DNA from: Thalia democratica
Taxonomy: Eukaryota
Direction of reading: 5' to 3'
DNA: 64,000 bases
NCBI GenBank assembly: GCA_965202585.1
Contig: OZ241826.1
Span: forward strand, 87,730,001 to 87,794,000
In this document: positions 1,133-63,253 of the stretch, piece by piece
Layout: every line of letters starts with the position of its first letter
How positions within the stretch are numbered: the stretch's first letter is position 1
Made by a program: the position numbers and the translations under genes
Notes under the pieces: model-generated
Databases searched by the model: none
What the model was told of the DNA's origin: nothing
Seen by the model: only the letters and a program-made list of their open reading frames with translations

Positions 1133-4100
1133 AGCTTGAGGAAATGAATTATTTAGACCTAAACAAGTTTTGCTTAAATAATCTAGCACATTTAATATTC
1201 AAAAGCTTCTAAAATTTACTTATTAATTATAAAAATAAAATTATACAATCTAAAGTAAGACTTAGAGGAATATAAAATGAACTATTTTTTAAAAGTTGAA
1301 ATTAAACTAGATTGATAGTTTCAACTTCAATATTAATTACAAACAAATATTCGAGGCTTGAAACATTATCAAAAATTTATCTAAAAAGACAAAGCTTTTG
1401 TCAAATTATCATAAAAAAATGTCTAAAATTGTAACTTAGTTAATTAAACATATTTAAATATAGCAAAATATATACACATTTTTACATTAATCTCTAACTA
1501 ATCTAGATTATTTAAAACACTGAAATACCAACTTAAAACTAATTAGGCTAGGGAGTATTGTACTAAAACTACACCAAGACATGTATTTTTTTTAAGACAC
1601 CAAGCAAAATAAGATTGAAACTCATTTTTAAGATATTTGAATATTTACACAACTAACTATTTCATTTAGTTAAGTTACCTTTTGGCTGGCTAATTACGTT
1701 TTGACTTTTCATTTGTTGGCCTGCAGATGTAGATAAAGGAAAAGTTTTATTAATTTTGCTATTTCTTGGTAGCTTTGGATTTATTTGATGACTTTTGAAC
1801 ACCTGAGGTTCACTTTGCGTCTTGGCTAAAGCTGGTACGCTTTGCATCTTTTCTGCATTAAATACTGTGTTCACTTGCTTTAGTTGTTTATGTTGGACCT
1901 GAGCATTGCATTGCATTTGGTTAGTACTTTTAACCTGAGCGTTACTTAGTAACTGGGAATTAACTTGAACCTGAGAATTACCAGGTAACTGAATATAACT
2001 CTGAACTTGAGGGTTGCCTAGTAACTGAGAATTACTCTGTACCTTAGGGTTGTCTAGTGTTTGAGAATTATTATGAACCTGAGGAATACCTTGTAACTGA
2101 GAATTACTCTTTACCTTAGGGTTGTCTAGTGTTTGAGAATTATTATGAACCTGAGGAATACCTTGTAACTGAGAATTACTCTGTACCTTAGGGTTGTCTA
2201 GTGTTTGAGAATTATTATGAACCTGAGGATTACCTGCTAGCTGAGGATTACTTTGTAGCTGAGGGTTACTTTGAAGCTGAGAATGGCTTAGCAATTGGTT
2301 AGTACTTTTAACTTGAGGGTTACCTGGTAACTGAGGATTACTTTGAAGCTGAGGATTACCTACTAACTGAGGACTACTTTGCAATTTTACTTGACCGTAG
2401 TTTTGTACTTGATTAAAAAATAGTTGTTGAGGAGCAACTGTTGTCGAATTTCCTGGATAACTCGAAGAATTTCCAGCTGGATATACAGTAAAATTTATTG
2501 GAATTCCTTGATTTTGAACAAGAAAACTTCGCTGTTTGTTCTGAAAAGTTCAATAAAATCGTTAACAATTTAGTATAAATAAAACTAAACAGTTGCAGTT
2601 CACGTTCAAGTTTTTTAAAGTAAACAGACCAAAAATAATTATGCTATTTTATGAACAGTAGTCATTACTTATGTTAAGTTATTATTAGTATATTAAAAGA
2701 GGTTATTAAAGATTTAACAAAACAAATATTAATGTGTCAATAATTTAATAATAACATTATTAACACTTAACATTAAACTATATTAAGGTTTTAATAACAC
2801 TCAAAGTAACTTATAAAGCATTAAGTTTTTTATATATTTCGTGGTTTTTAATATTTGTTAGTGTTTGCAATGGTAACTTAGTACATTATGTATATTCATG
2901 TCATGCCTAGTTTTATGTAGAGTAGCCCTAAGTAATATTTAATAATATCGTTCAGTATGAGTTAAATTAAAATTAGTTGTTAGTAGGTGTTTTATTTATT
3001 GTAACCATTCAAGTAACTTTATAAATTTATTGTTTAAGAAACTTACAATTCATGTAATATTGTACAAAAAAACTAACAGCAAGATACTGATTGATGTCTA
3101 GATTTATGGCTTGTCCCAAAGCGATTGAAGCCCGCTGTCCATGCTGTTAAAAAAGATATTTTGTTTATTCAATTAAATAGTAAAACTTTAATACTACTTA
3201 AAACATAGTTTTATTAAAAATTAATTATTCTTAATGCTTAGAAAGAATGTTTACACCAGCACTTTAATTTTATATTATATATTTCTACCTATTTTTATTT
3301 GATTTTCTTATAATTATGTGAATAATAAAAAAACTACATGTTTAAAAAACTCCAAACTTAATAAATTTGTAGAATATTTTTTAGATTAAAAAGTAAAAAT
3401 GTCTTGAAATCAAAACAGGAAACTCAAATAACGAAGAATCTTTAGTTACTAACGGTAACAGGAAGTCTAATATTTAGAAATAACTTATGTTTGTTGTTAA
3501 AAGCTAAAATTATTGCATTTCTCAAAAATTTATAAACAATTTCAACTTAAAGGCTTTAACCATTCTATTTTAAACAGAAAGTATAAGTTTTTAAAAGTAA
3601 AAAAAATAATTATTTCAAAAAATAAAGCCTACAATACGCACACTCATAAATTTATGTACATTTTTTTATAATTTGCACAGCTGAAACTTTTGTAAAGTAA
3701 CTTATCAAAATCCTTTTATTACATATAACGTTTCACAACTAAAAATTATAAGTTTATTGTTTAAAGTTAAGATTTCAATTTTATTAATAAATTTATATGC
3801 TAATAATTTCAAAGTCATTTTGAATAACGTAAATAATCAAAAAAATATATTATTGAGTGCCATGATTATTTAAGTAAAAAGGCTTTCTTTTTTTTCAAAC
3901 ATAAATCTTTTAATTTTACCCTATAAAATTAATTAACAAACAGAAAGTTTAAATATATTAAATCAAATAGTTCAACAACTAACCTCAGGTGGTAAGTAAG
4001 GTAAAATTGAATTCATTATTCCAAAAAGAATGTTTATTATTTCACCCTGTTGAAAAAATATTCTAAAAAAATTGAAATATTCACGTATAAAATATTTTAC

Positions 4101-5235
4101 ATTTTTTTGGTAAAAAAAAAAAAATTACTTGAAAGTGTTTAAACTCTGTATCACTATTTTTATATTAAACTTTAAATAATTTGTTTTCGACTTATCAAAT
4201 GTTATATATAAAAACTTATTTATGAACATTTTTAACCAAGTATGATTTTTAGTATATCTAGTAGCATTTCCTTTTATTTTGTTTTACTAAAATTTGTTCT
4301 ATTAGTTTTTGTTAAGTTATAATATTTTAATATTTTAGGCAATTTATTAAAAACTCACTCTTATTTGAACTTCTAAGCTTAGACTTATTGCATCATCGTA
4401 AAACTAAAAACAAATTTTTTCATTAAAAAAAAAGTTTAATTTGTGATAAATTATGTTTTAATTTGTTAAGTGAACTTTACATCGTAATATATTTCAATAT
4501 TTATTAGGTTTTTACATTTTAATACGTTGCCCTGTACTTTTCACACTAAAATATAGTGTAATCTTAGGTTGTCAAAAAAATTATTTAGTTACATTAATTT
4601 TAGTAGAGAATAATTAATTTTATTTATTATAAATTACCTTAGTAAACAGCTCTTGGTTGTCATTTCTTTCTGCAACTACTTTTTTATACTCTGTCCTTAA
4701 ACTGAATATTTTATTTTATATTACTTAATTTTAAAAATCCTGTGTTGATTTTTTTCAATTCAACTATTTAAAATGAGAAAATTTTTTACAAAATAAATAG
4801 TTAAAAACAAAACTTTGTTTTAAAAGCTTATATTAAAGTACTTTAAAAATTCAAGCCATCTAAAAAATTAAAGAATATTAACAGAACTATATGTTTATTT
4901 TTCGTTTAAAGGTGAGTAAAAAAGCTTGTATTTTTAATACTGTAGCAACCTAACTAACGATTGAAATTGAATTTGCATGTGTGATGCTTCATTTCTTATT
5001 TTTTCACAAAATTCAAAAATATTGTCTGCTCCCAAACTGGTGTTCACTAACGGATTTGCACCCTGTAAAAAAAACATAGTATTAATCTTGTCAGTTCATA
5101 AACATTAAAAAAAAAAATTTAATCAAAAACTAGACAAAAAACAATTCAGTTTAATTCTCTTATATTTATCTACTGGTTACTAAAATGTTATTTATAGTAT
5201 TAGCTTACATTTCCATTAGAGTTATGAGGAACCAT
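1133..5235 (-). CDS. TLE: Divergent Groucho/TLE corepressor gene, 5' part (Q-domain plus expanded GP-like region); the 3' part is unresolved and probably lies beyond the left edge
   Basis: Hand-spliced exons, all GT-AG and phase-compatible: 5209-5235 (MVPHNSNGN), 4959-5062, 4638-4701, 4359-4403, 3984-4046, 3078-3143, 1679-2540, 1133-1158. Translation ...NIFEFCEKIRNEASHMQIQFQSLRTEYKKVVAERNDNQELFTKFYDDAISLSLEVQIRGEIINILFGIMNSILPYLPPEHGQRASIALGQAINL... aligns by eye to the TLE Q-domain ([81 protein letters not shown]). Exon sizes 104/64/45/63/66 mirror human TLE1 (101/64/45/63/75, recalled from memory). Confidence 0.85.
1679..2540 (-). CDS. Large Q/N/P-rich repeat exon of the TLE-like gene (contains track ORF 1662-2384)
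   Basis: Acceptor ttttcag at 2541-2542 and donor AAG|GTAACT at 1677-1678. Length 862 nt, open throughout, phase 0 to 1, which matches the following 26-nt exon (phase 1 to 0). Confidence 0.85.
2030..2240 (-). repeat. Coding tandem repeat: about 3 near-identical 72-bp units (24 aa, xPQVHNNSQTLDNPKVQSNSQLQG) within a degenerate 18-bp/6-aa array
   Basis: The unit gaattactctgtaccttagggttgtctagtgtttgagaattattatgaacctgagga... recurs at about 72-bp spacing. Confidence 0.9.
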
Positions 5236-62623: not shown

Positions 62624-63112
62624 CTGTCGTAATGTTTAAAATATACAATTAAGATTTATCTTTAGGTTAAAAAAATATAAATATATTATTAAATATTAAA
62701 ATTTAAATTTAAAAATACTGTCAAGTCTGCAGTATATTTAAAATCTAGTTAACAAAAGTTTAAAATTAAGTAAAACAGGTTACATGGCATTTCAAATACG
62801 GAAAATTTAAATAATATTTTTTTTACAGAACCACAACTTAAAAACAAAAGCTATTTTTAGGTTTTATTTAGACACTTCTACGTGTTTTTAAATTATATTG
62901 AAATATATATATATAACTCTATTGTTGTGGCCCTTTAAAAAATATTTAAAAATTTGAATTGTAGAAGATTAAACTGTCTATACTTGAATAGTTGTGCACC
63001 CATTTAAAAAAATCTTTGAAATATTTCCAAGTAATAAAATTGTTCAAAATTTATTTAATTTTTTAAACGAATAATCTTAAATATTTTAAAACCTAAAAAT
63101 TGATTTACTAAC

Positions 63113-63253
63113 ATTGAAAATATTGGCGCCATAAGGATTTTTCCATAAATTCACAAGTTGATCTTGCCCAGTTGTAATAAACCAGTCTTTTTTGTGTGCA
63201 TATTTAAGTGACGTAACACTTTTATTGTGATACTTTACCTGATATTTTGCAGT
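63113..63253 (-). CDS. TLE: Penultimate WD40 exon of the second Groucho/TLE gene (5' part cut off by a transposon)
   Basis: TAKYQVKYHNKSVTSLKYAHKKDWFITTGQDQLVNLWKNPYGANIFN versus TLE [47 protein letters not shown]. Donor AAT|GTTAGT, phase 0. Confidence 0.9.

Follow-up and report, generated by a model that had tools for sequence, protein, structure and literature searches.

Does the locus examined here, a 64,000-nucleotide stretch of the Thalia democratica genome (C1:87730001-87794000; hereafter the window, with negative positions lying to its left), contain two tandem genes of the Groucho/TLE family? A preliminary description had proposed so, assigning N-terminal exons at the left end and C-terminal WD40 exons at the right end, both on the minus strand, to two neighbouring genes produced by a lineage-specific tandem expansion. 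Groucho/TLE is a dosage-sensitive master co-repressor used by Hairy/HES, Runx, Tcf/Lef, Engrailed, Nkx and Fox factors, and is usually encoded by one gene in invertebrates and by about two in ascidians.

Our analysis indicates that the window is very probably part of a tandem array in which a rapidly diverging Groucho/TLE subfamily, specific to this lineage, undergoes birth-and-death evolution; within it the left gene (gene B) bears a single lesion and the right-end element (R) is truncated. Since invertebrates and ascidians normally have so few genes of this family, the presence of at least 33 TLE loci in one genome is unusual; the proposed lineage-specific expansion with diverged copies is borne out, with three subfamilies and on a larger scale than envisaged. 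The view that two tandem TLE genes bracket the window holds insofar as both exon sets are TLE-type; it fails in that the right-hand set is a two-exon remnant, the left-hand gene carries an in-frame TAG, and the true tandem neighbour lies outside the window.

A tandem array of TLE copies

With 240 kb of flanking sequence added, a 304-kb region was compared, using tblastn with a mite TLE as query. It contains four full-length copies, A (plus strand), B, C and D, together with a partial copy E (exons 13-19) and two relics, namely R and, at -16.5 kb, a fragment with exon 18 alone. Copy A is badly degraded, with numerous stop codons and frameshifts and with mutations at two splice sites; copies C and D have intact frames. 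The true tandem neighbour of gene B is copy C (window 78567-90328), which thus extends from about 15 kb past the window end.

The copies are embedded in a higher-order unit of approximately 82-88 kb, with colinear offsets of +84.6 to +88 kb, in which a 3′-partial TLE copy, a full-length 19-exon TLE gene, a receptor gene with two immunoglobulin (Ig) domains and a spacer follow one another. Identity between copies switches along the gene; for example, B and A are 94-98% identical at the 5′ end and 72-84% identical at the 3′ end. The TLE copies are conversion or recombination mosaics of one another.

Structure of gene B

Gene B, on the minus strand, comprises 19 exons (3165 nt, 1054 codons) separated by introns of 0.1-1.9 kb, 18 of 18 of which have GT-AG borders. 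Its start codon is at 5235; exons 1-8 lie inside the window and the remaining eleven (9-19) occupy positions -723 to -5958. When the 19-exon model was projected through a four-way alignment it was fully open in C (1054 amino acids) and D (988 amino acids), and every splice site was kept in both; the open frames and conserved splice sites thus lend the model independent support. The GT-AG borders of exons 1-8 are conserved in three paralogues, and these eight exons, with their Q domain homology, confirm the N-terminal TLE exons and the ATG at 5235 originally placed at the left end.

The encoded protein has a diverged Q domain (exons 1-6), a repeat (exon 7), a Ser/Thr/Asn-rich middle region with a KISKKRK motif, and a seven-blade WD40 propeller (exons 14-19). 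Exon 1 (5209-5235, minus strand, as are all those that follow) encodes MVPHNSNGN and is followed by a gtaagc donor; exon and donor are kept in A, C and D. The Q domain starts in exon 2 (4950-5062; ...NIFEFCEKIRNEASHMQIQFQSLV), which has nine copies in the genome, all of this subfamily, and whose donor/acceptor pairing with exon 3 (4638-4701) is predicted. It continues through exon 4 (4359-4403; FYDDAISLSLEVQIR) and exon 5 (3984-4046; GEIINILFGIMNSILPYLPPE), the latter with an ...IP.LPPE signature also present in the genome's own canonical paralogue, and ends in exon 6 (3078-3143). Exon 7 (1679-2540) is a 287-codon Gln/Asn/Pro-rich tandem-repeat linker with repeat periods of 18, 36 and 72 nt; it is of equal length in B and C (862 nt) and shorter in D (664 nt) and A (632 nt). 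It matches no Pfam family, and a protein-database search with the 295-amino-acid open frame that includes it returned a 183-amino-acid metagenomic fragment as the sole relative. Exon 8 (1106-1158) is the last within the window, from which the gene runs on leftwards.

Gene B has a single lesion, a TGG>TAG change that affects codon 923 out of 1054 (window -4452 to -4454; C1:87725546-8). It falls on the Trp of a 'CWD' motif in propeller exon 17, inside blade 5 and 131 codons before the normal stop, and interrupts the frame from ATG to normal stop, the other 1053 codons being open. A nonsense codon of this kind normally triggers mRNA decay. The identical change is present in one other copy (C1:87545957, plus strand), 19 other copies having TGG; that copy sits 180 kb from B in the opposite orientation and is its closest relative over the 500 bp around exon 17 (91% identity).

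The right-end remnant

In a DNA comparison of the right end with the gene B locus, only window 62394-63254 is homologous, corresponding to -6065 to -5193 of B. This 0.86-kb segment on the minus strand, which is homologous to the paralogues and constitutes R in its full extent, contains two exons, intron 18 and the proximal 3′ flank. The penultimate exon (18) is represented by its 3′ four-fifths (63101-63254; TAKYQVKYH...GANIFN; ...TAKYQVKYHNKSVTSLKYAHKKDWFITTGQDQLVNLWKNPYGANIF), that is, 141 of its 181 nt, without the first 13 codons and without the acceptor. The last exon (19, 62504-62623) is complete, with coding sequence at 62623-62507 and a TAA stop at 62506-62504, and is 100% identical over 38 amino acids to intact copy C. 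The best solved-structure match to 63101-63253 is human TLE1 (1gxr_A residues 258-304, E 2.9e-12), in keeping with the TLE-type WD40 exons first reported there.

DNA homology of R to every paralogue ends sharply at 63254. No further TLE exon was found between 63254 and 78911 by tblastn, either with mite TLE or with intact paralogue C, and the assembly contains no orphan 5′ half, as in this subfamily a last exon of its own accompanies each of the 9 copies of exon 2 and each of the 12 copies of exon 17. Together these observations identify R as a truncated remnant. The right end is therefore not a complete TLE gene, the Q-domain exons and the full WD40 set being absent. Because the WD40 exons and stop codon that belong to gene B are located 2.9-6.0 kb beyond the left edge of the window, the left and right exon sets cannot be one gene, as had been argued from their positions.

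Exactly at the R breakpoint lies a 341-bp high-copy dispersed element (63255-63595), for which at least 466 candidate copies were detected; the 40 that were scored are 94-98% identical over positions 1-341 and are spread over many chromosomes. Between the element at the breakpoint and its nearest copy, identity is 98%, a difference of approximately 2%. One end has three tandem 15-mers (CCTCGCTAATCCGG-like), and there are no obvious terminal inverted repeats. It looks like a young, active non-autonomous mobile element. Ectopic recombination between two such elements was considered as the cause of the truncation and is unsupported, there being a single copy in the 304 kb. In place of the 5′ part of R stands an inverted duplicate of window 33494-39902 (63593-64000, continuing to approximately 70409 beyond the window; 87-90% identity), followed after approximately 70409 by further inverted pieces of the unit.

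Changes unique to R are found at 2 of 261 exonic sites versus 71 of 663 non-coding sites (p = 7e-9), and its exons are themselves a mosaic: the nearest relative of exon 18 is that of B, and of exon 19 that of D. On the simplest reading, selection acted on R until its 5′ part was removed by a recent insertion and deletion; gene conversion confined to the exons, or their continued use, may also lie behind the exonic conservation.

Family assignment and selective constraint

The C-terminal propeller of B, C and D is co-linear with TLE1, and its six WD40 exons match mite TLE in order at 35-61% identity. Residues 1-68 of exon 17 align in one stretch to 1gxr_A 177-244, and the proteins finish close to the stop with a TLE1-like ...KKATVYE.IY / ...VYE(V/C)IY end. 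This co-linearity and the mite TLE matches support assignment of the WD40 exons to the TLE family. At the N-terminus, the spliced 126-amino-acid sequence scores 128-138 against the Q domain of a canonical paralogue in the same genome, whose locus is Pfam-positive, versus 28±5 for shuffles (z about 21-22); the two are approximately 30% identical and have the same exon partition. A search with exon 18 against 1.84 billion representative proteins gave no annotated protein of the host organism among the matches, which consisted of generic WD40 proteins, canonical TLEs and three metagenomic fragments of 74-86 amino acids (64-70% identity).

Among A, B, C and D, the ratio of nonsynonymous to synonymous substitution rates (dN/dS) is 0.16-0.28 in the WD40 region, 0.5-0.9 in the Q domain, 0.5-0.7 in exon 7 and 0.6-1.0 in the middle region, with dS (about 0.11-0.15) close to intron divergence. 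The propeller is under purifying selection while the other regions diverge quickly. It is only this selection on the propeller that speaks for a function in binding EH1/WRPW motifs, which intact members would have retained; they may be nuclear co-repressors with altered partner specificity.

Genome-wide census of TLE loci

Copies were counted by tblastn of the flanks and by whole-genome exon censuses, which gave 38 matches to the last exon and 33 to the 68-amino-acid WD40 exon, falling into the three subfamilies. The subfamily of the window has nine exon-2 matches, each with a 3′ end 10-11.5 kb away, and nine full-length loci, to which four partial 3′-end-only copies are added (13 loci in all). 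At least four of the nine full-length loci are disabled, in a count that left out three full-length copies and the copies on contig C15: these are A, B, the copy at 87.536-87.547 Mb that has the same TAG as B, and the copy at 87.487-87.498 Mb, where exon 2 is interrupted by a TAA.

A second diverged subfamily has approximately 16 loci (63-68% identity in exon 17), distributed over C9:51446250-51976572, C1:1.5-2.03 Mb, C244 and C777; some of its last-exon copies contain stops. The third consists of five head-to-tail, canonical-like Groucho genes of approximately 45-55 kb each (C1:2355827-2623901), the exon-17 matches of which have equal scores and 52% identity to the window subfamily. Their Q-domain exons are nearly canonical, and one locus reaches the Pfam TLE_N cut-off.

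Proposed history of the array and evidence against it

On the birth-and-death reading, the units would have multiplied by unequal crossing-over, with copies exchanging sequence by gene conversion. R would have been under selection, or overwritten by conversion, until recently; its 5′ part would then have disappeared in a rearrangement or a deletion associated with the arrival of the 341-bp element. Intact members would use the diverged Q domain to oligomerise and the conserved seven-blade propeller to bind short repressor motifs, with changed partner specificity.

Several observations weigh against this account, in whole or in part. No RNA run was found to contain the locus, and two protein-database searches did not find a transcript-derived relative; the splice junctions, especially those between exons 2 and 3, 7 and 8, and 11 and 12, and the expression and function of any copy are therefore putative. 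In a genome-wide six-frame search, Pfam TLE_N (PF03920) had no match in the window, and single exons of 21-37 amino acids gave no match. The residue equivalent to TLE1 F661 is Tyr in all copies examined (KVYTLGC / KVYSLGC vs ...QIFSLGY) and that equivalent to E677 is Glu or Asp, so that, with the TLE1 numbering offset inferred from chain length, the conserved F661/E677 pair is absent; Copley 2016 (PMC4943189) describes this F/E pair as diagnostic of pockets of the Groucho type and names TLE6 among the exceptions.

The remaining points on that side concern the status of gene B as a pseudogene. Its TAG is common to a copy that differs from B by approximately 9% over that segment, yet no second lesion is present in B, and about 4.8% of random substitutions in its coding sequence would make a stop. 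Its own-branch WD40 changes comprise 13 nonsynonymous and 12 synonymous, fewer nonsynonymous than the neutral expectation (p = 0.002). Relaxed constraint downstream of the TAG was considered and rejected, the nonsynonymous-to-synonymous counts being 6:5 downstream versus 7:7 upstream. As B has no second stop and its own-branch changes look constrained, the stop is young, or was recently gene-converted in, or is tolerated; the shared TAG and the constrained-looking branch fit either very recent conversion or a tolerated stop. Finally, the TAG is seen in the assembly at a base that the read contigs leave uncovered, and could be heterozygous.

Alternative explanations

The alternative that survives best, although we consider it improbable, is that the R exons are kept by use, for example as alternative terminal exons of C, or that the copies with the TAG are kept as truncated or exon-17-skipped products. 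The private substitutions of R are 14-fold depleted across the exons, the exon-19 acceptor and the proximal 3′ untranslated region, and an acceptor of the right phase would be supplied by an AG within the mobile element. Exon 17 measures 195 nt and has matching flanking phases, so skipping it would keep the reading frame, and the same TAG occurs in two copies. Against this, R lies 15 kb downstream of the stop codon of C, compared with the far shorter introns of the 19-exon model, its use would delete a β-strand, and exon-restricted conversion or recent truncation explains the same substitution pattern in exons that are mosaic (B-like 18, D-like 19). A more elaborate version, to which we attach a similarly low probability, is that Groucho has been expanded to more than 30 loci (five tandem canonical copies and two fast-evolving subfamilies), with R perhaps a selected alternative 3′ module and the shared-TAG copies acting as truncated or exon-skipped, AES-like dominant-negative modulators that evolved independently.

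Less plausible still is that the array is an assembly artefact, produced by haplotigs or by a single-locus repeat that was collapsed or misjoined. The R breakpoint does coincide with a high-copy repeat, a classic place for a misjoin, and some copies are on the separate contig C15. The copies, however, differ by 5-25% in DNA, each with its own lesions, length variants and flanks, which is far beyond allelic variation. In two runs of one sample (possibly the assembled one), the introns of B are tiled by zero-difference contigs at a depth of 42-53, as for a single-copy sequence, whereas contigs over TLE exons, with a few differences, reach 4-10 times the intron depth; a run of a second, related organism gives the same multi-copy exon signal. 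The contrast between exon and intron read depth is compatible with a real multi-copy family, and the orphan 5′ half that a misjoin would leave is absent.

The least likely explanation, that two ordinary, functional tandem TLE genes occupy the two window ends, can draw on both exon sets being TLE-type and open where present and on the near absence of private changes in the R exons, but is contradicted by the loss from R of exons 1-17 and the start of exon 18 with no orphan 5′ half elsewhere, and by the in-frame TAG in B; for R it is refuted, provided that the assembly is correct at 63254.

Comparison with known TLE systems

The birth-and-death tandem array that we favour is a known kind of arrangement, formed here by genes of a known family, and what is unusual is the scale it reaches for Groucho. 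As in other arrays of this kind, there is unit duplication, there are conversion mosaics, and intact, nonsense-bearing, truncated and relic copies are mixed; the difference is that the amplified gene here is a global transcriptional co-repressor. In the literature available for searching, neither a tunicate TLE expansion nor an invertebrate array of this type was described.

In common with canonical Groucho/TLE1-4 (Drosophila Groucho, human TLE1), the subfamily has a Q domain coiled coil over the same small exons, a KKRK motif resembling a nuclear localisation signal, and a TLE1-co-linear seven-blade WD40 domain. It differs in that the Gly/Pro-rich region is replaced by an approximately 290-amino-acid Gln/Asn/Pro tandem repeat of variable length, in the Tyr at the F661 position, in a Q domain that falls below Pfam detection exon by exon, and in having 13 loci in one subfamily rather than one gene.

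There may be a resemblance to the biology of TLE6/TLE7, which are divergent, fast-evolving long paralogues. Like those vertebrate genes, the copies described here are lineage-restricted, rapidly evolving and off the F/E pocket pair; unlike them, they form a multi-unit tandem array with many pseudogenes and are of independent origin. A second parallel is with AES/TLE5 and Caenorhabditis elegans LSY-22, TLE members without a working propeller, since the product of B would end inside blade 5. AES and LSY-22 are conserved genes with a clean end after the Q/GP region, whereas B encodes all seven blades, cut by a single-base nonsense codon, and has no natural end before the WD40 domain.

If expressed, an array with a conserved propeller and fast-evolving oligomerisation and linker regions would be a natural experiment in co-repressor specificity and dosage. 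For annotation, the region mixes real genes, single-lesion pseudogenes and exon relics that are easily mis-merged.

Neighbouring features and the mitochondrial code

The two-Ig-domain receptor-like gene of the repeat unit lies at window 34513-38403 on the minus strand and has a long PN-repeat tail. It is co-amplified with the TLE genes in every approximately 85-kb unit, with a direct copy at +87 kb. The inverted segment beside R also carries a copy of it; as this copy lies on the strand opposite to R, in a head-to-head arrangement, a chimeric gene joining the receptor to the TLE tail was rejected.

The host genome is very AT-rich, with a GC content of approximately 24% in the window, and its assembly measures 802 Mb. 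One sequencing run that contains part of the locus is a marine metagenome. A near-palindromic inverted repeat spans window 15322-17455, in which 15322-15853 matches 17454-16923 at 95%; the segment 16032-16936 is its own reverse complement at 93% identity.

The mitochondrial contig (C1833) uses an ascidian/tunicate-type code, as read from COX1. Conserved Gly residues of this frame (LIGGFGN, FGHPEVY) coincide with AGA/AGG codons and a conserved Met with ATA, and there are five TGA codons where the standard code stops. The wide use of the ascidian-type mitochondrial code across tunicates is the subject of an earlier report (PMC7047913). COX1-like stretches full of stop codons at C4:56842736-56945724 and C757:31596-32138 are probably nuclear copies of mitochondrial DNA.

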